The position numbers and the translations under genes were made by a program. DNA of 64,000 nucleotides, from the NCBI GenBank assembly GCA_009103225.1, contig RHPI01002568.1, positions 137,742-201,741 of the forward strand. The letters run 5' to 3'. Of the stretch, positions 4,090 to 41,760 are shown one piece after another (positions within the stretch are counted from its first letter, which is position 1; each line of letters opens with the position of its first letter). The notes under the pieces were generated by a model. It searched no databases. It saw only the letters and a list, made by a program, of their open reading frames with translations, and was not told the origin of the DNA. Source of the stretch: Chlorokybus atmophyticus. Taxonomy: Eukaryota > Plantae > Mesostigma and Chlorokybus algae.

Positions 4090-7000
4090 GTGTCCACCAG
4101 CAGTACAGCTCGGGGTGCATCATAGTAAGTGTAATCAAACAACTCTGGTCCAATAGAAGTCGCTGCCAATATACACCCCATTAGACACTTTGCCTTACAA
4201 TAAGCCACAGATGGCAAAGCACGCAAGTTTCATGTATAAAACAATAGGTGCTATGTAATGTACAAATCACATATGCATTCAAGACTCATGGCCTATAGTT
4301 ACAAAGTGTACAATTCACACCGTATAATGCGATCCCATGCACATAAATATCAAAGCATTTTCATGTAAGGCTTTGTGTTGAAGGGATGTTTTTACATATT
4401 CGTTTAAAAGGTAATTTTGTGCATATGTGTCGCAACATGCTGATGAATTGTTGAAAGTAATACAATGAAGGGTAAGGTAGATGCTATTGATGTAAATGTC
4501 GGTATTAATAAACATGCGAAGTAGTTAATCTCGAACGTTAATGAACAATAGAGGATCTCAATGCATAGAATGGTCATATATGCTAGAAGTGAAGTAAGAA
4601 CTCATGATTGATATGTTGATGTGTTGATTGCCATATATAATAGGGGTTGAATACTATTGTAACAATGCCAATATGATCGTAGATGGCCGGTATTAATGGT
4701 AAGCGGTAAGCCGATGTATCACATATTATTATGATGAGGGAGATTATGCGTACCTTAAATGTGCTCGACCACATATGTATGTTACCATCAGATGTAATGT
4801 TTGTTTTTAAATTGCATCTGTATGAATATAAATAGCTTATTATCTTGCATCAGCAACACACACTCTCCGGCTCTTAATGATGTATGCATATGTGTGAAGT
4901 AGCCTATAATATAATGAACCGTTTTAAACATATCTCTTGTAGAAAGATTGACGCATGCACATTGTTATAAAGTACGACTACAATCATGCACATTGAGCCT
5001 TATCACAAAATCATCAGCATCCTCTTACAAACGTTTTCATGGCGAATTGGTGGAACTTCATCCCCTTGCTTGGGGCGCACGGCAGCTCCGCATGGGTCGT
5101 GTGACACGACCTGGCTTGGGCCGTGTGGCTGATTGACTGACGGGAGGAGGGGTCAGCTCCACGCGGGGAGCCCCTTCAGCGGCGGCGGCGGCGGCGGGCA
5201 TGTTGAGCCATCCGTTCGGCTAAGCTTATTGGTGCTGCTTGAGTATGGACAAGCAGATTGCTCAAGCAGAGGGGGAGAAGCAGCTTGTGAATCTTCTGCT
5301 GCTTCTGAACAACCAGACCTGGCATGACTCCGCCGCTTGCCGACCTCCTCCATGCTGCTGACCAGGCCGCACAGGCGAGTGAGGCGGTGATCAGCTCAGC
5401 TGGTCGGATTCGACAAGGCTACCTCTGCTGCCTCGCACGTAGCTGCTGGCTGCTAACTGTGCCTTGTCTGGCCAAGGTGAGTGCCGCACTTGTTAATGTT
5501 GTTGTGAATAACATGCTTTTTAGGCAGTTTGCTTGCTTCCGGAGTGTGTGCTGAAGCAGCGCACATGCGGCTTTACATGCTTTTGATGTAGGAATGCTTT
5601 CAGCCACAGCGCCTGATGGTTGCTCGTAGCACTCAGCTTCCTGACTTTGGCATTTGACAAAAACTGCTTGCGTGAGACTGACACTTGCTAGTGCGCGTTT
5701 TACTCAGATGTATATTTTGCCTTTTGGTATGGAAACTCACAAGTGCAAGCTCGCAAGCTGGCCATAAAGTGTTTGTTGCAACATTTGTGCAGGTGCTTGC
5801 GTCAGGCTACTGCAGACAGAGCTGTCAATTTCTGCAGTCCACTGCGGGCTTTTGGTAGTCAAGATAAGCTAGGACAACCACTAGAATTGGTTTGAGTTGT
5901 CACGACTAGCATCGCCATGGCGGATGCTGCGTTCCTGACAGCCTTCACGGCGTTGACTTGCTTCTGGGGTTGGCAAAGCAGGTCAGCGGACCTGCTCAGT
6001 AAAAGTTCACATATGGCGCTGTTCTGGTTGCACGATTGCAGGCTAGCCTACCCATTCATGAACTTGGTATGGTAAGTACATCACGAAAGTATACTCGTAC
6101 GCATCCGTATGTATATGGACAGCACGCAGACACACGTTTATGCTCATAGAATCGCGTGTGCATGCAAGTGTGCGTGTGCACACGCACATGCAAAAGAGCT
6201 AAAGGTACACAACAACGCATGAAGATGACGTTGACTATCAAACGGCAATGTAAATCTATATCAGGACACCAAGCTGGTAGTCGCTGCAGACGATGCAGCA
6301 TTGGCAGAGGACGTGCGGGCACTCGTGCTCGCACAAGCTGCCCAGGCCATCAAGCGGCAACTACAAGCCATGTTGGATGGTGTGGACGACCTTGCTTGCC
6401 CTAAGCAAGATACCGCCTACATGACCAGCAGGATCCAAGCACAGTTTGAGAGCGCCGAGATAGCGCCGTTGAAGTTAGACTTGACGCATTGCCGTGCTTG
6501 ATCGGGTGGCCTCCATCCACCGCGCTAACGGTGCAAGGGAGCAGGCTGCAGAGTTGGGGCCGTTGGAGGGCTTGATTTGTCTCATATTGCTGGAGATCAT
6601 GACCGACCCAGTGATGATAACAGGATCCGGTCAACTATGCAAGCGCACATTTGCAGAGCATTGGTTTGCCGATGGCCATACCACGTGCCCAATGACAGGT
6701 TAGTGTTCTTCTCCACGGGGTTGTTCAAAGTGCAGCTGTACAATAGTAGTGCGCTGAGAAGTTCCTTGGTGTTGTTACGATGGGCACAAATTGTTGCATG
6801 CTCATTACGCTGACTGGTGCAGGATTGAGTTTATCATCAACGGAGCTCGTTCCAAACCACACTCTGCGGGGCGCGATGGAGGATTGGCTGAAATGTCAGA
6901 GCAGGAGTTTATCTGTGCCAGCTACGGCAACACAAACTACCCTAAGGGCTTCGTCAGGCCCTCAGAGGTTGAAGTATCAGAGCGGAGACTTGTCACCAGC

Positions 7001-8900
7001 AGCACCCAGCACGAGCGAGTCAGCGGCCTTGCAACTGCAAACAGCGGTTTGCAATATTGTAACGGATGAAGACGCGCTTGATCTGCACTGCAGAGGAAAC
7101 GCTGACAAGCTCTGTGCGCTCTTGACGCTGGGTTTGTCGGTGCCCATCCAAGAAAAGGCCCTGAGTGCCTTGTGCGCAATGGCGGTGGATGGGCATTGTG
7201 CTGCCGTTGCTGAAGCTGGCGCAGTTGCCGAGTTGGTTAGATTTTTGCACGATGGTAGCGTCACCTGCAAGGAGCGAGCAGCAGACATTCTGGGCATTGT
7301 GGCCCGGTCGAGCACCGCCTTAACATGGCAAACGCCACGGCAGGAGCCATTCCCCCTCTTGTGTCGCTGCTGCAATCAGGCATTTCAACTTCCCAGGAGC
7401 GTGCAGTAGGAGCATTGACCACTCTTGCTTTGGACAGTGTTGAGAACAAGATGGCTATGTGCAGAGCCGGAGCTATTGCGCCGCTGGTGGCGCTACTGCG
7501 TACGGACACAACAACCTGCAAGTTGGCTGCTATGACAGCGCTCCGCATCCTGACCACCCATGCAGATGTTGCGGCGAATATTGAGGCTGGAGCCATTACT
7601 GATCTGGTGGCGAGTCTGAATGATGACACACAAGCTTGCCAGGGAGAGGCGGCGAGAGTGTTGAGCAATCTTTGTTCGTATGGCGCAGATCACAGAGCGG
7701 CTTTTGCGACACAGGAACGCAGGGATGCCAACAGCATGCAGCTGAAGCCCTCGGCATCATTGCCTTCCATAACGCTAAGAACAAGAAGGCTATCTGCAGT
7801 GCTGGTGGCATCAGGCAACTGGTGTTGCTGCTTCGCATGTCGAATGCTGCAAAGCTCAAGCAGGCTGCTTTTAATGCAATGTGGAACCTTACTCAGGATG
7901 GCGCAGATGGTTTTATAGCCACCGACGAGACAGTGGCCAATGCGCTACTGGCACTTCTCGGCGACGAGGATGTGCACTGTCAGGCGTTGGCAGCGCATGT
8001 CTTGAGTACAGTTGCATACCAATTTAGGAAAGATAAGATTGCTATCGCACGGGCTAGAGCCATTCCTATCCTTGTGGACATGCTGGCCAGGAGCACGTCA
8101 GAAGGCCAGGCAAACGCACCTGACGCTCTCCGCAAATCTGCTCCAAGGTATGAGAACGCGGTGGCTATCTGCAGTGCTGGAGGTATCCGGCCGCTTGTTG
8201 CACTGCTCCACATGTCAAACGCCCCAGGACCCAAGCAGGCTGCTATCAGAGCAATTGAGGTGCTGATTCGTCATGACAAAACCGCTGCGGCGGCCACTGT
8301 TGAGGCAGGGGCCATTGCACTGCTAGTGGCACTTCTTGGCGACGAGGATGCGACCTGCCAGGCGTTGGCTGCGGATGTCTTGAGTGGACTTGCTTACGGA
8401 GTTGCGAATGGCTGGATGGCCATTGTGTGCGCTGGAGCCATTCCTGCCCTCGTGGCTATGCTAAGCGCGAGCACGCCAACATGCCAGAAGCACGCCGCTG
8501 ATGCCCTCGCCAACATGGCGCGTGATGCTGCTGAGAGACAGGTGGCAATCAGCGAGGCTGGAGCTATTAGACCGTTGGTAGCGCTACTATGCAAGCCAAG
8601 CACACCGGAATGCAAGTTTGCAGCTATGAGAGCACTTCGAAAACTTTCCATGAACAACAATAGTGTTATGGCGACAATCTATGAGGCTGGGGCCGTAGCA
8701 CTGCTAATAGCGATTCGGGATGAAGAACCACGCTGTCGGGAGGAGGCGGCAAGAGTTCTATACGACTTTGGGTGCTAATGTTGCAGAAAACCAATTTATG
8801 CAAGTGGACATCTCTACTCTGAAGGAACCTCTGCATTCAGTGTGCTGAGAAAGAGCATGCACCAGTGTCAGCCATTCAACGCTGCAGCTCTCAGCTTACA
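4090..8900 (+). repeat. Segmental duplication copy 1 (upstream region plus U-box/ARM gene), paralogous to ~20840-25750
   Basis: Collinear shared blocks, e.g. cagtacagct(c/t)ggggtgca at ~4100/~20850, atatgcattcaagact, ggcgaattggt, a conserved CCAAG|GTGAGT donor, and the U-box and ARM exons. Boundaries approximate. Confidence 0.8.
5324..8778 (+). pseudogene. U-box/ARM-repeat (PUB-type) E3 ubiquitin ligase, frameshifted pseudogene
   Basis: U-box EGLICLILLEIMTDPVMITGSGQLCKRTFAEHWFADGHTTCPMTG|LSLSSTELVPNHTLRGAMEDWL is split by an intron. Several ARM repeats follow (AGAIPPLVSLL, AGAIAPLVALL, AGAIPALVAML). Frameshifts at ~6490, ~7325 and ~7700 relative to the paralog. Confidence 0.88.
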
Positions 8901-9315
8901 GCAGATCATGGTCAGCGGTGACAGCAAGGAACCAGTAGCATGTAAGAGAAGCGCACGAAGACCGTTCCGTCACGGTGGCAGAGCTTAGGCATCCAAGCAT
9001 GTGATTGGTGCGAGTTGTGACTGATTGCACACAAGCAATGATGAACGCAGTCTGGCATCCTGCAAGTGGCTGTATAAAAGTCAAGTGCATGGCGCGCAAT
9101 GGCAGGGAGCTAGCAAAATGCAAGCACGATTCCGTCGGTAGTACGAGAGTCGTATACCGCACGCTTGTCAGTATTGAAACCACACCCAACTGACTGCTTA
9201 CTGTGCTCTTGCCGTCACTGCTGCTGTCTCCAACTCGCCCTCCGCATTGTGTACACAAGCATGAGACAATGTTGACCAAAACCATTTGTAGTTTAGACTG
9301 TTAGCGGTGTACATA

Positions 9316-9634
9316 AATCTCCCAAACATATAGTTTGGAAGATTTATGTACACCGCTATGTGCATGTCACCTGGTGTACTTGGCGTTTACAAGGGAGGGA
9401 AGCAGCATCCAACTAACACAGGCCGCCAGCCGGCATCCGTTAAACCATGCCGCATGCAGGCAGATGCACGTGCAAAGGTGTTGAACTTATCATATCCATC
9501 GTTTGTGAAACCAAGTTTCACAAACGATGGATATGATGAGTTTACTGCTGGCAGCAGTAAGTCCGATTGATGCCACGGATTCATAGTGTGCCGCAATGTG
9601 TGCGCACGTTGTGCATGCACAACGTGCGCACACA
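9316..9634. repeat. Cluster of three inverted repeats/palindromes
   Basis: 13-bp stem with one mismatch at ~9316-9346. Perfect 23-bp stem with 3-nt loop at 9489-9537. Perfect 38-bp palindrome at 9597-9634. Confidence 0.9.
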
Positions 9635-10529
9635 AAGTACACAAAGTACGCGCCATAGCGTCTTGCTTTGCTTATTGCAGTATGACGCTACCATATCATA
9701 CGCATCGGAAGGCGCAGGGCGCTCATTGCGACTTGTGTGTTGGTTGAAAGCGTTCTACTCGCATCCGATGTAGGTGAGCAGCGTTGTATAAGTCATTCAG
9801 TCACAGCAGCGCTTATCAAGTTGAGAAGCCCGACTCCTGGAGTCCTTAAGTCCTCTGCACGGTTGGTCAGTCCGGGCTAGTGGATGTCTGCAGCATCGCT
9901 TCTGGAGGCCTCGTGGCGTTCATGATGTGCGGATTTAGGTAGATGATGGACGTATCGGCATGGAGGCTTATCATGGTAAAGGCGTGAATTTTTGTCCGCG
10001 AGGAAGACGAAGCAGTATTGAGAACGTGGCTGAGTGAAACAGTGCCGTGCACGTCAACCTCAGGTACACGACGTGTGCACATGCACTACTATCTACTCAC
10101 CTCCTACTGCGGTGGCGATGACCCTGAATGCATGCGCAGCGTACGCCCTCCATGCAGCGGCCTGTCTTTTCTCCTCTGGCAAGCATACACCGTCTCTACC
10201 CGCCGCGCAGCCAGCCTCCTCCACTGCGCTTGTGCACATCCGTCTGCAGCTGATCGTGAGCGGCATTTTGGTTCCACACCTGCTTCAGTTCTTCAGGGGT
10301 GGTGTGGAAAGGGTGATCGCTTACCGATTGCTGTATGCACTAGGTTGCTTTTGTCATGGCATGATATATTTGTCAGTTGTGCTTGACTACCATGCTGTGT
10401 AACTACCATTCCGACACTGCATGTTGAAAGGGAGTGTCCTTGCTCTGCGTACACAAGTTGGTGACACAGGCTGTCCGTGATGAGTTGAACAAGTGCAAGA
10501 GTTGGTAATGCAGCAAAGCAAGCAAGAGG

Positions 10530-11101
10530 CTAAGCAATGCGTGTGCAACCAGGAGCAATGGGCAGTATTGCTTCTAGCAAATTCGTTAAGCACAAGTAGC
10601 TAGCGGTCACAAACATATGGACACCGGAACACACTTCACCAACTCGCTCGTAAAGCTCACAGTAGTGCGCTGTACAAGACCAATCCGCAACATCCATCAA
10701 TTCCGCTTCATCCGAAAAGCAGGTATGCAGGTCCCTTGCCACCTGCCTTGCGGTGACGTCATCTTGTACATACACAGCAAAGTTAATCAGGCTCTCCAGA
10801 AGTGGAAACCCACTTTCGCTCTCATACTGCTCGTGGTAAAGCCTGCTTTTAAGTCGATTGTCATAATGAATGGATGTCCAGATCCGCTGCAAGCAAAAAA
10901 CAGCGTGGCGGCCAGTGTCATCATGGTGTGCATAACGCCAGAATAATGCGCTCCCTCTGCCATCAGTGTGGTACCTACATACCACTTTCCCACAGTGCGG
11001 TAAGCCTCCATACTGTCTCGATCGAGCTCGTGTGTAGCCAGACACTCCTCCACAGCGTCCTGATCTACGTTGTCAAGGTACACATAAAGGTCCCACCCCA
11101 T
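10530..11101 (-). CDS. Putative small protein of unknown function (two overlapping frames joined by an intron or a frameshift)
   Basis: Protein-like stretches MGWDLYVYLDNVDQDAVEECL.. and RIWTSIHYDNRLKSRLYHEQYESESGFPLLESLINFAV... A polypyrimidine TGCAG acceptor lies between them. No family recognised. Confidence 0.35.
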
Positions 11102-23192: not shown

Positions 23193-23744
23193 CCCTCGCC
23201 GGCCCCCGGCCCCGCAATCCTTTATGCATAATAGTGGTTATCGCTGGTTGTAGGTGAAAACGAACCAGAAAAATTGTGTTGTGGTGACAAGAAAAGTTGG
23301 CTTCCTGAAGCACTTCTTGGGTTCCCTTCAGAAGCATTGTGTCGGGGACAGCTCTGTCACCATGCCATCCCTCACTTCACTTAACCAATCACTGCAACGC
23401 TCTGCAGAGGCAATTTGCCACTGCCAAAGCAGCAGCGTTTACTCCTTGTTGTGGAACAACAAGAGCGTCACCGACCGCCTCAATGGCTGCTTGCAAGTCA
23501 GTGGCTTGAAATGTGGACGCTCACAGCGCTTCTTGTAACTGCTGCACTTGTTGAAACTGATCGCTAATGCATGCCTGCTAGGACATTGAACAAAGCTTGA
23601 ACAGCTTAGACCTTGCAAGTCTCAACGATGCGGATGCGACATGCGGTCTGCGGGCTTTGATTGCAGAGGATCTAAAGGTGCAATGCTTAGAACTGTTGAT
23701 GACTTTACCATAGCCAACAACGCGAATGTATGAATGTATGCCAG

Positions 23745-25562
23745 GACACCAAGCTGGTGGTGGCTGCAGAGGACGCATTACTGGCAGAGATTGTGCGCGC
23801 GCTTGTGCACGGGCCGCAAGCTGATAAGGCCATCAAGCGGCGGCTAGAAGTTGTGTTGAACGGCATGGGCGACCTTGCGTGCCTTGAGGAGGATATCGCC
23901 TGCTTGACCAGCAGGATTCAAGCCCAGTCTCAAAGCACAGACACGGAGCAATTGGAGCTAGACTACTTGACAAAGATCGTTGCCTTGCTTAATCAGGTGG
24001 CATCCACCCACAGCGCTAACCATGTGAGGGAGAAGGTTGCAGAGTTGGAGCCGTTGGAGGGCTTCAACTGTCCGATATCTACGCTGGTCATGGAGGACCC
24101 AATAATCATAATGGGATCAGGTCAAACATGCGATCGCTTGAGCGCAGAACGTTGGTTCGCTGATGGGCATACCACGTGCCCTGTCACAGGTTAGTGTTCT
24201 AGAGTGCAGCTGTATACCAGCAGTGAGCAAGTGGCCTTAGTGTTGTGCTACTGAGAACGACGAATTGTATACACATAATGCCAACCAGTACTCGCTGGTG
24301 CAGGTGTACAGCTATCATCAACCCAGCGCATCCCGAACTACGCGCTGCGGTGTGCTGTGGAGGATTGGCTGAAGCGTCAAAGCACAATTCTGTCACCGGC
24401 AACTTCCCCAACAACAGCTGGCGCAAGCTTCTCAGCGCACCCCCAGGGCTCAGATCACAGCGGTAACTTGCCAGCAGCAATTAGCACAAGCGCGTCAGCG
24501 CCTTATCAGCGGCAAGCCGCCTGTAACACCTCATCATACGAGACTAGACTCGTGCTGCAAAGCAGAGGGGACGCTCGTCAGCTCTGTGCGCTCGTGCGTC
24601 CGGGCATGTCCATGTCTGTGCAAGTGGAAGCCCTGGCCGCATTGCGCCGCGTGGCAGTGAATGGGCAACACGCTGCCGTTGCTGAAGCTGGTGCAATTGC
24701 CAAGTTAGTTAGACTTTTGCACGATGGTATGCCGACCTGCAAGGTGCGAGCAGCAGACGTTCTGGGCATCTTGGCCCGGTCGAGCACTACTTTGAGCAGG
24801 GAAATCACCATGGCGGAAGCCATTGCCCCTCTGGTGGCGTTGCTGCAGACAGGCACGCCAACATGCCAGCAGTACGCAGCTTTGGCTCTCTCCAAGCTAG
24901 CTTGTACTTCTGAGAACGTGCAGGTTATGCGCAGTGCAGGAGCTATCGGGCCACTGGTCACGCTGCTTCACACGTCCCACGCACCAGTGGTCAAGCGGGC
25001 TGCTATGAGAGCGATTGCGCAGTTGATTCGTCATGACGCTTGTGCTGCTGTGGCCAGTGTCGCGGCTGGGGCGGTTGTGCCGCTAGTGGCACTTCTGTGT
25101 GACGAGAATCTGGACTGCCAGGACTTGGCAGCGGGTGTCTTTGATGATCTTGCATGTCAACTTGAAGTTGCAGATGGCTGGGTGGCTGTTGTGTGCGCTG
25201 AAGCCATCCCTGCCCTCGTGGCTATGCTGAGCGCGAGCACGCCAACATGCCAGCAGCGCGCCGCTGAGGCCCTCGCCAGCATGGCGCATGCGAGTACCGA
25301 GAACAGGTTGGCAATCGGCCGCGCTGGAGCTGTCAGGCCATTGGTGGCGCTACTTGGTATATCAAGCACACCAGAATGCAAGTTGGCGGCCGCAAGAGCA
25401 CTTTGTTATCTTGCCTACAAGAACAAACGTGCTAACGCGGCAATCATTGCGGCTGAGGCCGTTGCACCGCTGCAGGCCCTTTGGGATGCATATGCACATG
25501 CATATGGCGAACCACTATGTCAAGTACCCGCGGCAAGCGCGCCCCGTCGTCTCGCGCAGTGA
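23745..25562 (+). CDS. U-box/ARM-repeat (PUB-type) E3 ligase, copy 2; last two exons (23745-24189, 24304-25562) are open
   Basis: U-box FNCPISTLVMEDPIIIMGSGQTCDRLSAERWFADGHTTCPVTG|VQLSSTQRIPNYALRCAVEDWL, joined by a phase-1 GT-AG intron (24190-24303), then ~6 ARM repeats. Upstream exons (~22050-22740) are uncertain and separated by the gap. Confidence 0.85.
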
Positions 25563-28389: not shown

Positions 28390-29470
28390 GGGGGGAGCAC
28401 CTTCAAGCTGCTCCAATAACATCAATGCGAGGCAAAGGAAAGACATTCTTTTTCGTGATGTTGTTGCGCGGCCGGTACTTAACGCACATGCGCAAGGCTC
28501 CTGTCTTGCGCACAAACAAGATAGGTGCACCATAAGGAGACTTGCTAGGCTTAATGTATCCACATTGCAGCGGGTCCCCAACTTGTCGCTCCGCCTCCTC
28601 GAGCTCAGCCGGAGACAACTTGTACACCGGTCTGTACAGCGGCTTGTGCAAGGCGGCTTGTGAAGCCCTTAACGAGCTCAACATGGTGATCAACGCTGCG
28701 CGCGGGTGGCAAACCAGATGGTAAACCGTCCACCATGATGTTTTTAAACTCCTCAAGCAACTTCTGCACTTCAGGGTCTTCCAAACGGTTCCTCGGTTCC
28801 TCCACACCAGTGCCAACCAGCTTCGGATCTGACTTTGACGGTGTGTCACGCCCCAAACACAACCATGCATCCTTCACGTCATTTCCGGACCAGATCTGCT
28901 CCATCTCAGCCTCAGAAACTTGTGACACCAGCTCCGGAGCCCTCCCTCTCAAGCTAGAAGCATGTTGTTGTGCATCTTGCTGAAACGCTTTCACGCCATG
29001 CACCTCACGCGCATTTGGTGCATTACTGGCAGCTGCGACGCAGCTCACATGCTCTTGAACTAAACACAACGGGAAAAAGCATCCAAGCAAGTCATAGCCA
29101 TACCACCACCTTCCGCGGCAGCAAATAGGCGCTTCCTTCAATCAATGGCGGGGTTATATCATATACATATATATCATACACATGATGTCTAAAACCAAGG
29201 TAGCCCCAAAGCCGTTGCCGAGCTCGATGCAGCAAAACCGTAGGCTATCCTCCATTATCCCCACGTGGACTTCAAGCTCTTTGTGCAGCTTTGTAGCTCC
29301 GGTGCACGGCCGTCTGCAAGAGTCACGGAGCCGGCATTCATCCACAAGAGCCACTTGTGTCGACGCGCAACCTCCCAATTCATGAAGTTGCTGTTCGCGC
29401 CGCTATCGAGTAGCAATTTGCATTCCACCCAAGGCTCATCACCCTCCTGAACCATGGCCATGACTGTCAG
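28390..29470 (-). mobile_element. pol: Degenerate Ty3/Gypsy pol fragment (protease plus RT N-terminus)
   Basis: LLLDSGANSNF (aspartic protease), [18 protein letters not shown], and [42 protein letters not shown]. Frameshifted and truncated. Confidence 0.9.
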
Positions 29471-29764: not shown

Positions 29765-31151
29765 GTATCATTACCATCATCACTAGCACTGCTGTTGCCA
29801 GAGACACTCTTTGCTCTGTTGTTCCCCGAAGCATCCACCAACCACCTCCATCCACACTCAACGAGTGCTTCCCTTTTTCAACATGAGCTGAACCTGAATC
29901 TCTCTTCCAGGTCTCATTCTCTCTCTCTCTCAACAGCAGGCTCCCGGCAGCAGCTCACCATCCAACTCGTCTTCTGTGCTCAGCCTGCGCCGGCCTGGCC
30001 GCTTGCGCCCATGTTCCGGCCGCCGCCATGCGGGGGAGCAGGCCCGAACGTCGCAGGCTGAGCACAGCGTTGCTCATTGGATTGGGCAGCTCAGTAAACC
30101 AGGGGACACTTTCACTAAGCTGGCGGAGGCGGCGAGCGGGAGAGTGTGCTGGGCCAGGCGCCGGGGCGAAGGACGCATAGCAAAAGAGGTAAGCTGACAT
30201 CCCCTTTGATGCGCCTCAAGGCTTATGGCGCTGGCAGAAGGTGAACGCAAACGCACAGCGCATGACGTGTCTACGGAACATGACACCCAGTCGTACAAAC
30301 AGACTACTGTGCCCTGGTATTGATCTCAGCTTGTTTATCTATTGACTCTGTCTCCCTGGCGCTTTCAATACGCCCCCCTCCCATCGCCAGTCCCCCGGGG
30401 TGGGGGGGTGGGGGGGTTTGTCTCCGATTGCCCTCTTGCAGTGCAACAGTGACCAAACTCGCAGTATGTATATCAGGCTGCACAAATAACTGCGTGAAGT
30501 AGTGCGTTCATGCGCATGTCCTTGCCATAACTCGCGCATCCGCTTGACACATTGCCAGACTGCATGCTGAGTCATCAACGACCATGCATTTTTGATTGTG
30601 TATGAGTGTCAGCGTGGGTGCATGATCCGGGCGTCCAGATCGCTTGAGGGCGGTATCATGAATTCCAAACTTGATGGACAGCGCGGGTGTGGAACTATGT
30701 TGCAGTTGTTTGACCTTTTGCAGTACGTCTTGGTGGCTGCTGAACAGCTGGTGTAGGAGGGATGAGCAGCCGCTTCTGGGGGATGAAGCCCACCTCTGGT
30801 AGGTATGGCGTCACGTTTAAGGCAGATTTGCAGTTTTTCAATGAAAAGACACAATTTCGTATTTGAAAAAGTAGGGGTCAAAGCACTGCTGCAAATGTCA
30901 TGACATTGCAGCTGGCATGTGTAGAGGCAGCAAGTCACAATCGACTATGTGTGTAATGGACTGACAAACTGTATGTGCCATTGATGTGCCGCGTTTGCAT
31001 GAAGGCCTAGAGGCAGTACACGTGTAGAGGTTAGACTGGGCATAAAGATTCAACGATTCCCACAACTTCATCTAGTAAAAGTACAATGCGCTGACATGTT
31101 CGCGATTTCGTCTTGTCTGTAACTTGAGCTGAGCTGTGTTCTCAACTGTTG

Positions 31152-34100
31152 TTATGCATCGCCATCTTGGACCAGATCCTCATCAGCATTGATCCGTCTG
31201 TAAAACTCTGCAAGCGTGATGCAGGGAACATGATAGAGTCTGGCCATTTTCTTCAGATCTTCACAATCGGAGATGACGGCGACGCGGTAGCCCTTGTCCA
31301 GCTTGTGAAGCGCGCACTTGACAATGCGATAATTATGCTTCAGCTGTTGGCTGCGCAGATGTGGATACCCAGTGAACACCCTTCTGTCCTCAAGCCTGTC
31401 CTGGTCTTGCAAGAAGCGCATTCTCGCCCTGCGGAGCTTGTTAAGAGACTTCCATGTCTTGCCAGCAGCGTCGGCAATCGCTGCACCTCGTGTTGGGTTG
31501 TAGTGTAAGTTGCCAATTTCGCTGTTGACAACAAAAGGGAGGCGCAGTACGGCGTCAGCATAGCGCGGCGCACGAAGCTCTTTTTCTATGGCGAAGTTTT
31601 TCTTTCCAAACTCCAACGCTGCATTCACATCGGGCACCAGGTACAGCTGCTTCCCCGTGCCGTGCAATGGTCGCTGCCGCTTGGGAGCTGGCGGGTCTGC
31701 AAACGTCACCCGCTTACGAGCTGGTGGTTGCTGCTTTGGTGCTGCTGTGCTTCCGTTTTGTTCTGCACTCTTCACCTCGGGCTTGGCGTCCACTTGTACC
31801 TTATCTTGTGCTGGTGCCTCAAAAGGTTGTTGTTCTTGTCTCCGCTGCTGCGACTGCTGCTGCTGCTGCTCAGGCGAGTCCACGGCTTTTTGCGTCTGCT
31901 GTGACGCTGTGTTGTTTGCTTCCGCTGCACGTGTGTGCTTACAGGCTGCAGCTTGTTCTTCTCTATCTTCGCCAACGGCTTCGTCCGGCTGCCCTTCTTG
32001 AGGTTCGCCATCTTCAATAGGCACTGCAGCCATGTAGTGTGTTCTCGTCCCTCCTGGCAGAAGAGCCACATGTGCAACGTTATAAAAGTACTCATCTCCT
32101 GTGGCTTGGGCTGTTGGAGTGATGGTCAGTGATCGCACTTGTCCCTGATCTGCATCATCGTCCAAGAGCGTTAGTTGCTGCATGTCGCTGTTCCTATTAC
32201 ACATGATGTTGCAACTAACATGGCAGCATTGACGGTTGACGAGTGGTTACAGAGTGGTGTGTTGTGCCCACCTATGGTCCAAATTCTAAGGTTGATGTTG
32301 AGCGCTCGAGACAGGGAGTTGATAACCATATCGTCCGCCCATTCCGTGTCCTCAGCCATCCGCTGAAAATAGTCTTCCATGGTTCGCCCGTTCAAGCGCT
32401 GCAAAAGGCTGTCATGATAGTCGTCATCTTCCTGCTGTAGCTTCCACAGGTGGTCGAGAGCCATTGAACGAAGTTGCCGCGCGACATCCGAACCCTGAAT
32501 ACCAAAATAGACTCTCGCAATGGCATGGAAGAAGCAGCTTCCGTCTGCTTTTACATCTTCAAGTCGAAGAGGCGTGTACGGCGGCGGCAATGCTCGCAGT
32601 GCTCTCGTCAGGCGGGCAGCATCAGTTTCCTGTTCAGCGATCATGACGGGTCTGTCGTCTTGTTCTCTATCGTCTGCACTCTCAGGCGTCAAGGTGGGTC
32701 GCTGCCGCGCCAGGCTTGACAGGTGCTCGTTCTCTCCCAGCACTGACACTTCTGCTCTCTGGCGCTCGCGCATCAGTGCTTCACCATTGGCTTGTGCGCT
32801 GCGAGTGCGATCCTCCGCATCGCGGGGCTCTTGCAAGTCCTTGCACGCTAGCTCAAGGTGTTGTGAGCAGATCCGCAGCATGGACAACGATGTTTGCATG
32901 CTGGCGCGTCGCTTATCAAAAGCAGCCTCGTTGCTTGAGACAATGTGCTGCAGTGCTGCCATGATGATGTCGGGCAAGGCAGGTGGGCGACTTCGCGCTC
33001 CAGAAAGAAGGCGTCGCTCAATGAAGATTACCTGCTGGTTAAACCTTGCAAGCAGTGTCTGTTCGAGAGTGCTGCCGAGGTCGTCGTAAACTACCTCCAG
33101 CCGCTCCCTTAGCTTCTGCTTAAGGGCACTCAAGCTGGCCGTTTTGCGATACTCGTTAATTGACTCCAGCAGCCTACGTATCACTTTCTTTTCGTCCTCT
33201 ATGAGGTAGTGCTTCTCCAACACGGAAGGCTCAAGCGTTCGGAAGGTGCCCTTGCCTTCGCCGGCAATGAAAAAGTGTGCCAGCTCTTCTTCCAGCCTGG
33301 GCTTGCCTATTGTGTCCAAGTACTGCTGCACAGAGGTTCTCACTTGGGTTTCACCATTCCGCAATTGTGTGTGATGTGACAGCATGCTGCTGATGTAAGT
33401 TGCCATGCGCTTGGTCAACTCAGAAGCTGCGTCGTTGATGCAAGCTCGCAGTTGTGGTATAAGGTGCTGGAACTTCACGTCAATGTGATCGAACAGATAG
33501 CTGAACAGGTAGAAGGATTTGCGGTTGCCACAGTATGTTGGATGGAGGGCGTCCTTGGCGTTCCTGGCAGTCAGCTTTTCGCTAATCTTCTTCTCATCAC
33601 TCCAGTTACGCTCCGCATGTGTTAGGGCGCTAGCCATGGCTTCACTGACATGCTCATCGACGAAAGTATGTATGCAGCCGTCCACTTTGCTGCGGATCTC
33701 ATTAAGCAACGGTTTGAACTCTTTTTCGCATCCATCCCTGAAGTTTTCACGACCACGCTGCGTGTGCCTCCTCCTCTTACAGTAACTGTCAGCCAACTCT
33801 CGCAGCGCTCGCTCCTCCACTGACAGGGTATTTGATGTCTGTTTGCAGAGCTCCACGCCAGCATGTATGCGGTTCTGCAGGTCCTTCGTAAGCCTCAAGG
33901 CAGCAGACACCGACGGGAGCTCAATCAAGCTCAGCAACTCCCACCCACGGCACAAAGGCAGTATTTCTCGCGCGTGGTCCGCATCCTCACCCTGTAGCTC
34001 TTCCGCGCCTAGGATGATGGCTGCGTGATGCAGCGGATACGAGGTTATAAGCCGGATGCTGCTGCTCATGACTGCTTGCATTCGCTCTTCAACTTGAGTC

Positions 34101-35619
34101 ATTAGGTCGTTGTTTACATCTTGCTCTTCTTGCGCTTGCGGCCATTGTTCCAGCAGCATGTCGGACACTAACCTCTCCAACGTCTCAGAAGTTTTTTCCT
34201 CAAGTGTTCGAGCCGCTGCTTCAAGATGACTGCGCTCCCTGCACATGTGTGCAAGCCCAACAGCTGGGAGCCCCTTTCCACGGTTGAAGAGCCAGATCAG
34301 ATGGTGGCGTTCGGGACTGTTGCACAGATTGCGCATGAACCTGGAGTCCTGTAGAAACTGCACAACTTCCCTACTGCATTCAGCTTCCCGCTGCGTCACG
34401 CACACGACGGTTGTCGCCTGACGCAACATGTCTTGTGTTGCAGCCAGCCTGAGAGGATCGCAATCATCGAGCCCTGGGCCATCCATTAACCGGCAGCCTT
34501 TTACAATGCGACATGGTGCAAAGACAGTGATGCTCTTGATAGCTGCTCGGCACAAGTTTCCAGCACAGTTGGCCTGTTGCAGCGCTCTGCGCACAAAGCA
34601 TCTGTCTAGCATGGTGTCTGCAGATGCTGCTGCGTACAGGAAGGTTTTCCCAAGCTTCTTCTGCTTTTCAGCACGCAGTGTTGCATTCACCTCCTTTGAC
34701 TTGTGCTCGTCTTCCACCAACTCTCGGTACCTCTTCTGCAACAGGTGCAGCTCCTGCTTTGCAGTTTGGTCGTCTGCAGGCATTGTGATCTTGTTGGCTA
34801 GAACCGAAGCATGAAGTGCAGGTCGAAGAGTGGTTTTGACGCACTCTCGAAAGGCTTGCAGCTGTTGTTCCACCCAAGCAGCATCGTTGTACTCCACCAG
34901 TGCGTGCCAACTGGTACCATACTGCACGTTGACTACAACCGCTGTTGTTGCGGATGTCCCATTGGAGCTAGGAAGCAAGAACGGCTTGTGACGCCCACCC
35001 TCGCTGGTGCTTTCTCCATTGTCATCATCGTCACCAGTATCGTTGGTGGCGTCAATGCTATTCAAGGAATCACCATGGCACACGCGTTTGATGCTGCCGT
35101 ATGTGCACTCGTACTCGTTGTTCGCGTTGAACCATGATGGGTACACTGCGGCGTCCTCGTTCTCCCCGGTCCAGGTTTCCAAAACAACCTCCATGCTCCG
35201 CAGCATTTCACAGATTTCATCCTCCGTCTTGCTGTTCTCAATGCTTGGCAGGACAATGCCTTCTTCCTCTTCTAAGACACTATGCACACAAACTCTCTCT
35301 GAGCTTTGACACGAAGCTGCTGCGTGTAGGAACGACTTACATGCAAGCCTGCATTGCAAAAGGCATACCTCATAACATGCTTGATCGCCTCAAGCCCTTT
35401 GAGCCGTTTCAGGCGACTGAGTACAGCCAGATTGTCATGGTACTGGTGCTCGTCTACGCTTGTCAGCAACAGAAGAAGGTTGATGATAAACGTCTTGCCC
35501 ACTCCGTTGTTGCCCAGAAATGCAACGGCCCCTCCTGGTGTCCCTTCCATGATCGCCATCCAGCACCGCTCTGTTGCCTCCAGCACTGCTTTCAGCTCCT
35601 CCTTATTGGCGCCCTGCAT
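31152..35619 (-). CDS. Dynamin-like (SLIP-GC-type) GTPase, helical stalk, OTU deubiquitinase, PIN-like domain fusion, ~1418 aa (further 5' exons likely)
   Basis: Exons 35619-35369, 35279-32272 and 32149-31152 join in frame through GT-AG introns; the second intron has a CTAAC branch point. GTPase motifs GNNGVGKT, LLPSSNGTSATTAV and DGPGLDD. OTU motifs DVKADGSCFFHAI and THYMAAVP. PIN-like motifs YLVPDVNA, LPFVVNSEIGNL and VAVISDCEDLKKMA. Confidence 0.85.
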
Positions 35620-38230
35620 TCATGAGAGGCACGATTGTCATGGCACGGGACTTTCTTTCTTTTGCATCAGCTCTGCCTGCTCTCACTATCTCGCTTCGAA
35701 GGCAAGCTGCTACGCCTGCGGCCATGCAAGGTGATGACACATGAGTGACTTGTAACCCTTTTGCTCACCGCACGACGTATTGTGGCCAAGATGTCCTCCA
35801 GAGCATATACCGCCTTGTTGACTGGCTGGCTAACAAACCTGGGTTCTATTTGAAGGACGGCACAAGTGTAGCATATTTTAAGCAAGCACGACAGATGCTG
35901 CATGGCGGCAAATACATCTTGCTTGCCTCCAAATGCGTGTAGTAGTCATTGCGTGAGTATTGTGCTGGTTGGTTTTTGCGTGCAGGCACTCTCGAAGAAA
36001 ACTCACCTGTTTTTTCTATTCTTGCGCGCTTTTCCACTGGAGTCTCAACATCTTGCGGCTCTTCTGCATTACACGCATGTACTTAATTGCACATGCAGAT
36101 TTTGCAAGTTGTGCGACCATTACCAAAGCCACATGCTGTGCGCAGCAAGGAGTGAACAATGCATGCTCGAACAGCACAAACGTCAAGCAAACAGTTGATG
36201 TTGGTTTTGTTTCCAAAAGCGCACCTGCTGTATCCGCACTGGCAGCCAGCAGGGCATTGCGTTGCAAAGCCCATTGCGCACGTAAACCGGCTTCATGTAC
36301 CCACTGTGTTGTCGGTGCGGACCCAGGTGGTCTGAACGACGCGCGAAGGCGTTGAATATTCCTGTGAGCAAAGTCCAGTAAAGTAACATACAGCGAATGA
36401 GTACATATTCGACAACAGTACCAGGTATGTGGTGGGTGCATGCCTGCATTGGTGTACATATGTACCTTCTGGTGGCTGAGCTATTTATAGACTCAACACG
36501 CACTTCCCATACTCCTCCAAGAGCCTTTTCAACTTCCTGCAGTGTGCGGAGATGTGAGCTGAAGCAATGCCTGAAGGAATGCATCCTGCCGCACAAGGGG
36601 CAGTCGACGCCAAGATATAAGCAAACTACTCGTGCTCAAAGGTGTTGAGACGAGGACATTATGGTAATGTCTCCTGTGCGATGCGAGGAGTGTGCCCCCT
36701 TCCTCATGCAGTAGTTTGACTGCAGCTCCAATTGGTGTACTTGTGATTGTCTAATCAACCAATCGTGTCTGCATGTGTGCAGTTTTGGTGCAAGTAACAT
36801 AGAACGTTCAGCCAAAAGGACTTCGTGCCTGAGAATGTACATGTGTGTACACATTGCCATATAGAAAACACACAAACAGGCTGGACGATGCCAATATGCT
36901 ATCGCAATGCCAACTTCAACCGATGAGACAGCATGTATTGATGTGCACTTACTAAGCATGCATAGATGGAAGTTGTTCCTAGAGCACCAGTGCTTTCGGT
37001 GCACATCGCGCTGACTCACCGGCCTTTGCAGCCATTCTTGCAGCTGCAAGCGCCTTTCTTCAGCAGTTACGTCTACGTCTGCAGTAGGGAATCGCGGAAG
37101 CTTGAGGGGGAGCTGGGGAGGCATTGCTGCTGCTCGTCCTCTCCCCACAGCAAGGTCTCTGGTGTACACATTAAACAATGTCAACATCGTTAACAAGGAG
37201 GTTGAAAATGCGCCATACATGTATAGCTGAATGCAAGTTGCGTCGTTGTGCTGACAGCGCTGATATCAGAACTGCCACGAACTTACGATGTCTGAACGTT
37301 GCCACCAACAGCCATGACAGCTCTCAGGTGTGCTTGCAGCACGACAACCTACCACCACCAACACCAAAGCGACAGCGACAACAGCTGTTGCTACGTCAGA
37401 GACCAAGTACTACCGACGGTGGGAGGGATTGCACAAGTTCATTGGTGAACAATCACAAGTCTACGGATGATCTCCAGTTAGTGCCGTATGCGCGTGCGGG
37501 TGTATGTGATCATGATGAAGGAAAGAAATATGCAGTGATGCCAACTTTTTACGCACATTAGTTCATTCCGTAGCAGGGAATAACTTGCAACACGCGCAGC
37601 ACATACCAAGGGCGCAACACCTCCAACTGCAACACCACGAACGAAATACATCACAAAACCACGCAAGAAAAGCCATTCAGACCACCACACACGGTGACAC
37701 CAGGACAACACCCAGGACTCACCTCACAGTAGGCGCATGTGTCGCAGTTGCAAGTGCCAACGAGCCGTGTCGTTAGTGCTGTCGCTCGTCCGCCTTGCTG
37801 CTTCTGCTGCGTCCTTAGCCCCACACCATGTAGTGCGTGCCTCACTGGTGCGCAGCACTCTGGTGCACACCGCCGCCGCCGCCGAATAGCTGCCTCCCTG
37901 CCGCGCAGGTCAAAGCAGCAGCAGAAGACGACCCATCAACCGCCAGCAGTTTGTACATTTGCAGCTACGACGTGCACGGTACCTAAGTTAGTCAACTCGG
38001 ACTGACTTCAGCATTGAGCCAGAGCGTTACGGTCCTTAGTTAATTTAGCTACCCTAAGACCCGCAGGCGGCATGAGACTCGCAAGACGTTGCATCAGGCA
38101 TTTTTGTGCCGACGACTGACGGCAGCAGTTGGTGTCGCGCGGCCGCTAATCATTCAGTGACGACGGTCGGTGGAGCGGCGTCGTTGCAGGTCTGACGCGA
38201 CGTGTGGCCTAGCACCGTCTGAACGCGGTA

Positions 38231-41282: not shown

Positions 41283-41760
41283 AACCTAGAATTTCTCACT
41301 TACAGTATCACCAAGTACCAAGTAGTTGGTGATACTGTAAGTGAGAAATTCTAGGTTAAGTTGTGCATGCCGGTGTCGTCTGTGAGACTTGGGTGACTTT
41401 GCTGTGCGTGGACTTGGTGTTGTTGATTGTCGCGCGCAACTAGCAAGCTGTGAAGGGAATCCAACTGTGTACAACAAGCTGTCCCGCTTGCGAAGAAACC
41501 TTTACCACTGTGAAGCGGGTACCTCATCTTACACGGTACTGCTGTCATGGGTGTGCGCTTGGTCGCACTCACGTGGATGGTGTGCTAGTTGCATTCCGAG
41601 TGCAGCATCAGTATACTTGTTGCATTCGTTTACCTCACTTAACAGTAGAGAGTCTTATGTTACCTCAGTGCAAGGAACTGTGTCACAGCATTACACGATA
41701 GTAATGGCTTGTTGACTCACAGTATTACCCCCTTTGCTTATGAGTGTTCTGCATCAGCGC
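41283..41760 (+). mobile_element. Diverged 5' repeat and primer-site region of the same Gypsy family, preceded by a perfect 32-bp hairpin
   Basis: tttacctcacttaacagt and gatagtaatggcttgttgactcacagtattaccccctttgct align with the minus strand of 59700-59410. Hairpin arms at 41283-41314 and 41326-41357. Confidence 0.8.

Follow-up and report, generated by a model that had tools for sequence, protein, structure and literature searches.

A dynamin-type NTPase joined to an OTU domain and a likely PIN-like domain in one expressed protein of Chlorokybus atmophyticus

Much is known about the GTPases of the dynamin superfamily, about OTU deubiquitinases and about PIN RNases taken singly, and in our literature search a protein combining a dynamin-type GTPase with OTU and PIN domains was nowhere described. 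We describe here a gene of the streptophyte alga Chlorokybus atmophyticus, Chrsp82S07939, whose 1565-aa product appears to be such a protein. The gene lies on the minus strand of a 64,000-nt stretch of contig RHPI01002568.1 (positions 137,742 to 201,741 of the forward strand, assembly GCA_009103225.1). This whole stretch is called the window below, and all nucleotide positions are given in its numbering.

The described systems closest to this protein each resemble one portion of it. Among dynamin-superfamily proteins, the bacterial dynamin-like proteins (DLPs) and the mitofusins, as represented by Nostoc BDLP (2j68), Campylobacter DLP1/2 (5owv), IniA and Mfn1, share with the Chlorokybus protein the succession of P-loop, LLPS..T switch I and DxPG switch II, with a long middle region after these motifs. 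The deubiquitinases OTUD5/DUBA and OTUD3 and the viral OTUs (vOTUs) of nairoviruses have in common with it a D-G-x-C cysteine motif and a C-terminal His. The PIN_4 domains of SMG6, EST1A, Nmd4 and SWT1, which are those of eukaryotic RNA-surveillance endonucleases and their inactive kin, are the nearest described counterparts of its C-terminal domain. Regnase-1/MCPIP1 and N4BP1 are immune regulators that pair a PIN/NYN-type RNase with ubiquitin-system functions, and by analogy they may be likened to the Chlorokybus protein in coupling ubiquitin-system chemistry or binding to a PIN-like RNase within one polypeptide. However, their nuclease domain is of an unrelated family, NYN and not PIN_4, they have neither an OTU domain nor an NTPase switch, and no homology is claimed.

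Structure and expression of the gene

The coding sequence extends from 37124 to 31152, with its stop codon at 31154-31152, and is made up of 8 coding exons (37124-37020, 36536-36466, 36361-36225, 36063-36007, 35845-35769, 35613-35369, 35279-32272 and 32149-31152); these and all features of the gene given below are on the minus strand. Evidence for transcription came from one run each (X1 and X2) of two studies, dated 2013 and 2021, whose small assemblies are transcriptome-like. In each study we observed one contig of ~4.98 kb that aligned to 31120-37100 with 100% identity and 0 mismatches to the window, and that skipped seven intervals, each of them with GT..AG borders when read on the minus strand. 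Taken together, the exons in these contigs amount to 4698 nt, contain a single, terminal stop, and give a translation identical to the EukProt/JGI protein 'Chlat1 Chrsp82S07939' of 1565 aa (P0001), for which the public annotation recognizes the OTU domain alone. The same protein was the one match obtained when the open reading frame (ORF) at 32174-35359 was used as query in a word-index protein search. In tblastn comparisons, the protein matched the window in eight minus-strand blocks, from 37124 to 31155, and no second copy of the gene was found within the 64 kb.

An earlier note, prepared from the letters of the window, had proposed a gene of three exons encoding ~1418 aa. The 2 introns on which that proposal depended are exact as claimed. 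An 89-nt GT..AG intron at 35280-35368, located inside the NTPase domain and downstream of the P-loop, and a 122-nt GT..AG intron at 32150-32271, located in the OTU domain, where it parts the half with the Cys from the half with the His, are both absent from the X1 and X2 contigs, and the spliced frame is open over both junctions (...AIKHVM/SVLEEEE and ...LRIWTI/DQGQVRSL). The proposed 5' end, in contrast, was not borne out, since upstream of it the contigs include another five coding exons, the first of which opens with an ATG at 37124. The ATG at 35619-35617 that had been taken as the start sits in the last bases of a further GT..AG intron, of 155 nt (35614-35768), just upstream of its acceptor AG at 35615-35614. 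The remaining introns, at 35846-36006, 36064-36224, about 36362-36465 and about 36537-37019, are likewise of the GT..AG type in the spliced contigs.

Retention of the 122-nt intron would introduce a stop ahead of the OTU His. Because this intron parts the two catalytic halves of the domain, splicing is required for an active enzyme, and such splicing is what we observed. The fusion and both of the splice junctions proposed for it are real and expressed, and the gene is best taken as an ordinary nuclear one of C. atmophyticus, present at a single locus and expressed. One further contig of X1, of 285 nt and low depth (4.2), is located in this region at 36337-36782 on the plus strand and is spliced at GT..AG so as to skip about 36422-36539 and about 36663-36781. 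Its orientation is opposite to that of the gene, whose 5' exons and introns it overlaps, and it may represent an antisense transcript.

Domains of the protein

From its N- to its C-terminus, the protein consists of a segment of ~165 aa, the NTPase domain, a middle region of ~480 aa, the OTU domain, a linker that includes a motif resembling a nuclear localization signal (NLS), and a domain of putative PIN_4 type. The N-terminal ~165 aa and the middle region are outside any family assignment.

The OTU cysteine isopeptidase domain, at aa ~1130-1285 (31995-32584, with the 122-nt intron inside), is firmly predicted by sequence comparisons with Pfam, with the PDB and within the family, and the identification made in the earlier note holds. 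Pfam OTU (PF02338), for which the cut-off is 23.3 bits, matched it at 30.6-34.0 bits, and Peptidase_C65 likewise exceeded its own cut-off. When the single sequence was searched against the PDB, the closest solved structure was the vOTU of a nairovirus L-protein (1e-8). When a family profile was used, human OTUD5 was matched at 2.4e-15 and OTUD3 and the vOTUs comparably (2e-15 to 3e-14 for the group), with the His of the query aligned to that of OTUD5 ('IHYNSV'). The catalytic Cys and His are intact, as had been noted: the motif DGSC provides D1143 and C1146 (Cys codon 32536-32534), and the motif THY provides H1271 (codon 32039-32037). An alignment of 8 family sequences shows D1143, C1146 and W1211 unchanged in every sequence and the His of H1271 in 7 of the 8. 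A difference from the described OTUD deubiquitinases and vOTUs is that the Chlorokybus OTU is embedded in a 1565-aa NTPase protein.

Residues ~165-620 (34112-35568, with the 89-nt intron inside) are predicted to form a P-loop NTPase of the dynamin superfamily, as indicated by Pfam, by profile comparisons with the PDB and by language-model features of the ESM Atlas. The G1 motif GNNGVGKT (aa 183-190; 35514-35491), the switch I motif LLPS..TT (aa 332-343; 34978-34943) and the G3 motif DGPG (aa 497-500; 34483-34472) are collinear with those of BDLP, which has 'LLPS..CT' and 'DSPG' at the latter 2 positions. In an alignment of 27 NTPase sequences, the columns for G1, switch I and G3 are invariant or nearly so. 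The P-loop pattern GxxxxGK[ST] is present, its Gly24 and Lys25 columns being invariant, and the segment between G1 and switch I is long and variable; in the Chlorokybus protein this insert is ~140 aa and contains an acidic low-complexity stretch. A profile of the NTPase family, compared with the PDB, matched Nostoc BDLP best (2.8e-6), followed by Campylobacter DLP (4.3e-6) and then by IniA, a cyanobacterial DLP and Mfn1. By Atlas features, aa 150-1090 scored 0.97 to Dynamin_N clusters, some of which also contain DUF7605 and are labelled 'SLIP-GC-like', and the nearest of these clusters share 205-217 of 256 features with this segment. Apart from Dynamin_N, Pfam yielded generic P-loop matches alone in this region, PADLOC and NCBIfam scans gave P-loop noise alone, and DUF7605 (PF24564) had no Pfam match at E<=10 in the protein.

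The earlier description of this domain as a dynamin-like GTPase is upheld at the superfamily level only. The NTPase appears to be a divergent member of the superfamily that is closest to the bacterial DLPs, probably of the bacterial-DLP/mitofusin-like kind, and it may belong to the little-studied group to which the Atlas gives the label 'SLIP-GC-like'. The nearest Atlas clusters are SLIP-GC (NUGGC)-like proteins of animals and fungi with Dynamin_N and DUF7605, and uncharacterized SLIP-GC-type proteins of frogs and fish were direct phmmer matches of the NTPase; these proteins are about 700-1000 aa in length and have neither OTU nor PIN, and their label is an automatic cluster name. With respect to the bacterial DLPs and mitofusins, which are matched at E about 1e-6 only, the Chlorokybus protein differs in having the insert between G1 and switch I, in lacking an NKxD/NRWD G4 motif, a membrane paddle or a transmembrane segment, and in having the OTU and PIN domains added at its C-terminus. 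The middle region, aa ~621-1100 (32672-34111), is outside any named family and is presumed to be a helical stalk; weak similarity alone was detected for it, to the same region of some relatives.

Between the OTU domain and the C-terminal domain is a linker of about 110 aa (aa 1286-1395; 31665-31994) that is rich in Q, A, P and E and is probably disordered. A consensus-pattern search identified in it the bipartite NLS-like motif RKRVTFADPPAPKRQR (aa 1378-1393; 31718-31671), which may serve as an NLS. The remainder of the protein, aa 1396-1565 (31155-31664), is tentatively assigned to the PIN-like domains of PIN_4 (SMG6/Nmd4/EST1A) type through its relatives and through a weak structural model, both of which are described below.

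The family and its C-terminal domain

An exhaustive search with aa 150-1340 against 1.84 billion representatives gave 157 proteins at E<=1e-3, of which we examined the best 150. The best match other than the protein itself was at 2.8e-25 and 26% identity, and the family is therefore small or very divergent; pairwise identities within it are about 20%. Among the 150 proteins, 96 matched the NTPase region, 17 matched both the NTPase and the OTU domain, and four of these 17 (P0008, P0032, P0051 and P0027) had the GTPase-OTU-C-terminal layout of the Chlorokybus protein. The architecture, which was not a recognized one in the earlier note, is thus rare but not unique: at least four other proteins with the same layout, and about 17 with GTPase and OTU, are present among the best 150 matches. 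The named organisms with GTPase-OTU members are Cavostelium apophysatum (Amoebozoa) and Gefionella okellyi (a malawimonad), and the NTPase-only relatives include a protein of Palpitomonas bilix and 'uncharacterized' proteins of frogs, bichir and gar. All of the relatives with names from public sources are labelled 'uncharacterized' or 'hypothetical'. Word-index protein searches with exon 2, with the C-terminus and with the 8-sequence alignment returned the protein itself or nothing, but the family is invisible to this tool, and little weight can therefore be given to its blanks.

By these observations, the family is rare, fast-diverging and patchily distributed among eukaryotes, with an NTPase and stalk that carry an OTU domain and a variable C-terminal module, which may be PIN, leucine-rich repeats (LRR) or none. 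Transcription and correct splicing of the fusion, and the reappearance of its layout in eukaryotes only very distantly related to Chlorokybus, mark it as a selected architecture rather than an accident of annotation. The parts are domains of known kinds; their arrangement is surprising and is conserved enough to be meaningful.

Individual relatives showed additional features. The Cavostelium protein (P0084, 1882 aa) has the same NTPase and OTU, with the OTU His changed to Gln, and has at the position of the PIN domain a long LRR tail, a layout reminiscent of NTPase-LRR immune receptors. An NTPase relative of 1602 aa (P0022) has an N-terminal PHD-like zinc finger (zf-HC5HC2H), which hints that part of the NTPase family is linked to chromatin. 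On a 12.4-kb run contig (L008), a GTPase-OTU relative (P0043; 1704-5411) is located beside an ORF of 1444 aa for a ResIII/SNF2-type helicase (6223-10557, plus strand), both ORFs being uninterrupted. On a metagenome contig from the European Nucleotide Archive (L004), another relative is about 3 kb from an ORF for an HNH endonuclease.

The C-terminal domain of the Chlorokybus protein was not detected directly: Pfam, NCBIfam, PADLOC and a single-sequence phmmer search of the PDB gave nothing for aa 1370-1565, and PIN_4 (PF13638) in particular had no Pfam match at E<=10 for either aa 1370-1565 or aa 1395-1565. This segment is collinear with the C-termini of P0008, P0032, P0051 and P0027, and Pfam PIN_4 was found at 45.8 bits in P0008, at 33.5 bits in P0032 and at 21.2 bits in P0051, the last of these being just below the cut-off of 21.9. 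In BLASTP comparison with P0032, the alignment was collinear over 146 aa, but with an E of 0.24. By hhalign, the C-terminus matched a profile of the four relatives at E 6e-4 and a probability of 29%, over the 53 columns that correspond to the first strand-helix-strand unit, and 1 of 3000 composition-matched shuffles attained the hmmsearch score of the real sequence against the relatives' profile. That profile gave a weak PIN match alone when compared with the PDB (1o4w, E 0.54). Atlas language-model features of the C-terminus scored 0.89 to PIN_4, which we treat as a lead only.

Modeling of the C-terminus by AlphaFold2 (AF2) from the single sequence gave a predicted local distance difference test (pLDDT) score of 35. 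The model made from a 5-sequence alignment, whose weakness is considered below, fell among PIN folds in three libraries. Foldseek placed the PIN domains of SMG6, Nmd4 and EST1A at the top (E 6e-4; template-modeling (TM) scores 0.40-0.47), with nearly all of the top 50 matches being PIN, and a shape search of the ESM Atlas returned PIN_4, NYN and SWT1 clusters (TM 0.45-0.51). In both the PDB and the Atlas, the structures that rank first against the model are in this way the PIN_4 domains of SMG6, EST1A, Nmd4 and SWT1, and the model has the same strand-helix order, with an Asp after strand 1 and a Glu after strand 2. It differs from them in having no direct Pfam match and in having two of the four acidic positions non-canonical, and the Chlorokybus protein further has no EST1/14-3-3-like or other nonsense-mediated decay module. 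In the aggregate, the homologous architecture of the relatives and a low-confidence model that lands among PIN folds give moderate support to the PIN call that had been made for this segment, and we consider a PIN fold quite likely for aa 1396-1565.

Proposed mechanism, competing explanations and genomic surroundings

As an explanation of the observations as a whole, we favor an expressed protein of NTPase-stalk-OTU-linker-PIN_4 type that belongs to a rare eukaryotic family, and we regard this as reasonably probable. By analogy to other dynamin-superfamily proteins, nucleotide-dependent dimerization of the G-domain and assembly of the stalk would act as a switch for the two C-terminal modules or would concentrate them. 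Of these modules, the OTU domain would strip ubiquitin or a ubiquitin-like modifier from a target, and the PIN domain would be engaged, probably in the nucleus, in binding RNA and possibly in cutting it. In Chlorokybus itself, the function of the PIN domain may be to bind RNA or protein and not to cleave, because just two of its four acidic residues are cleanly kept. A role in RNA surveillance, or in defense against viruses or transposons, would fit the pattern, the protein may conceivably be an innate-immunity effector, as the earlier note had suggested it could be, and there is a circumstantial resemblance to immune/conflict NTPases in the patchy distribution, the fast divergence and the swappable C-terminal modules. 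The family adds to the set of NTPase-plus-effector proteins that are suspected in immunity or genome defense, and the Chlorokybus protein offers a direct test case for whether nucleotide-driven assembly can gate ubiquitin removal together with RNA binding or cleavage. This significance is tempered by the facts that the architecture is not unique and that the Chlorokybus PIN domain may be catalytically dead.

Several of our observations weigh against the explanation that we favor. With regard to the NTPase, Pfam Dynamin_N (PF00350) matched at 23.3-26.3 bits (E 9e-6 to 7.5e-5), which is below its cut-off of 27. The segment at the G4 position, FNRGKG (aa 562-567), has no Asp, and the (N/T)KxD motif of G4 is absent across the family, relatives reading YxER or NRE with no conserved Asp; specificity for GTP is therefore not established. 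With regard to the OTU domain, an Asp or Asn two residues after the His is the third residue of the triad in many OTUs, and several solved OTUs have Asp or Asn there. The Chlorokybus protein has Met at this position (H1271-Y-M1273), whereas the OTUD5 chain has an aligned Asn; among the relatives, Asp is found in P0008 alone. With regard to the family, the PIN-bearing relatives come from run assemblies and metatranscriptomes that have no taxon labels (guanine-plus-cytosine content 35-63%), with no informative Pfam match among their neighboring ORFs, and the tree of 27 GTPase domains is star-like and holds no information on whether the OTU/PIN fusions had one origin or several. With regard to the C-terminus, the statistics for its similarity to the relatives' profile are weak (P ~6e-4 by two methods). 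The AF2 model from the 5-sequence alignment has a PIN-like order of strands and helices, but its pLDDT is 51 and its predicted TM score 0.45, and its TM-scores to known folds are overall only 0.40-0.51. In VIA-align comparisons with 48,161 chains, the top five matches of this model were all PIN, yet their Z values of 6.2-7.2 are in the background range. Finally, the third acidic position of the PIN domain is occupied by Tyr1507, which follows an invariant Asn1506, where the four relatives have N-D or N-E, and in the ungapped alignment the fourth acidic column contains Cys1529, within the sequence S-D-C-E-D. The earlier note had acidic residues at positions 1, 2 and 4 and a substitution at the third. 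This was correct for positions 1 and 2 (D1407, codon 31631-31629, and E1444) and for the third, and the fourth is more irregular than it had indicated.

The main rival on mechanism concerns these last substitutions. The protein would be the same one, but its PIN domain would be a pseudo-nuclease that serves as an RNA- or protein-binding adaptor, leaving the OTU domain as the only catalytic effector and the NTPase as its switch. PIN domains of SMG5 and Nmd4 act as adaptors without nuclease function, and the structures of both are among the fold matches of the model. The Tyr at a position that is Asp or Glu in each of the four relatives, the Cys in the conserved fourth Asp column, and the detection of PIN_4 in three relatives and not in the Chlorokybus protein all favor such an adaptor, and with only two of the four acidic positions clearly kept, nuclease activity is doubtful. 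On the other side, D1407 and E1444 are retained, D1528, E1530 and D1531 adjoin Cys1529 and could substitute for it after a shift of one residue, and the relatives keep the full acidic set, so that the ancestral function of the PIN domain was probably catalytic. We regard the pseudo-nuclease as a distinct possibility, although it falls short of being probable.

A broader proposal is that GTPase-OTU-PIN proteins form an old and unrecognized class of eukaryotic conflict or surveillance effectors, in which the dynamin-type NTPase would be triggered to assemble, for example by RNA of a virus or transposon or by a complex marked with ubiquitin, and would thereby gate a deubiquitinase and an RNase of the same polypeptide. 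On this view, the exchange of C-terminal modules (PIN, LRR or none) within the family would parallel the exchange of sensors and effectors among immune NTPases. This idea we consider speculative and rather doubtful.

It is unlikely that the protein is a membrane-remodelling dynamin, engaged in fusion or fission of the mitofusin/BDLP-like kind with the OTU and PIN domains as accessories. The best solved matches of the NTPase profile (BDLP, Campylobacter DLP1/2, IniA and Mfn1) do all act on membranes. However, we found no hydrophobic or membrane segment in the Chlorokybus protein, whether transmembrane or paddle-like, its maximal Kyte-Doolittle mean over 19 residues being 1.33 with the peak at the P-loop. 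The protein also has the NLS-like motif, its Atlas neighbors are labelled as nuclear 'SLIP-GC-like' GTPases, and its GTPase relatives bear chromatin-reader or LRR modules and not membrane anchors.

It is similarly unlikely, and in our view very much so, that the gene is cargo of a large mobile element, as the earlier note had suggested it could be, or that an integrated virus or a large DNA transposon was its recent source. The closest solved OTU in the single-sequence search was, as described above, that of a nairovirus, but with the family profile the scores of the cellular OTUD5 and OTUD3 are no lower than those of the viral OTUs. In 24-44 kb of the window we found no repeats, direct or inverted, on the two sides of the gene, and neither a transposase nor a second copy of the gene was found in the window; with no terminal repeats at its flanks, the appearance of transposon cargo was not borne out, and we rejected this explanation. 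In addition, the gene has seven spliced GT..AG introns and was steadily expressed in two studies, the whole GTPase-OTU(-PIN) layout is also found in other eukaryotic supergroups, and a normal U-box/Armadillo (ARM) gene, described below, is located about 5.6 kb away.

An artefactual origin of the long protein, through fusion of two or three adjoining genes by read-through or mis-assembly, could draw on the low-complexity linkers between the domains and on the automatic origin of the public gene model, but is largely refuted by the spliced contigs, one in each of two studies, that include all exons and agree with the window throughout, by the single continuous frame with one stop, and by the identical domain order in uninterrupted ORFs (1268-1498 aa) of distant relatives.

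With respect to the surroundings of the gene, two adjoining plus-strand ORFs at 23730-25562 contain a U-box (E 3.6e-6) and ARM repeats (E 2e-28). Together they look like a gene for an E3 ubiquitin ligase of the plant U-box (PUB) type, and the distance from it to the 3' end of the GTPase-OTU-PIN gene is about 5.6 kb. An 82-nt direct repeat internal to this PUB-like gene (24813 and 25197; 73% identical) is attributable to its ARM repeats. Just 3' of the GTPase-OTU-PIN gene, the translation of overlapping minus-strand ORFs at 28403-29141 resembles by eye the protease/reverse transcriptase junction of a long terminal repeat retroelement, and Pfam gave nothing for it; this segment is probably a decayed retroelement fragment. 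A near-perfect palindrome with 36-nt arms, 97% complementary, and a 3-nt loop is located at 41283-41357.

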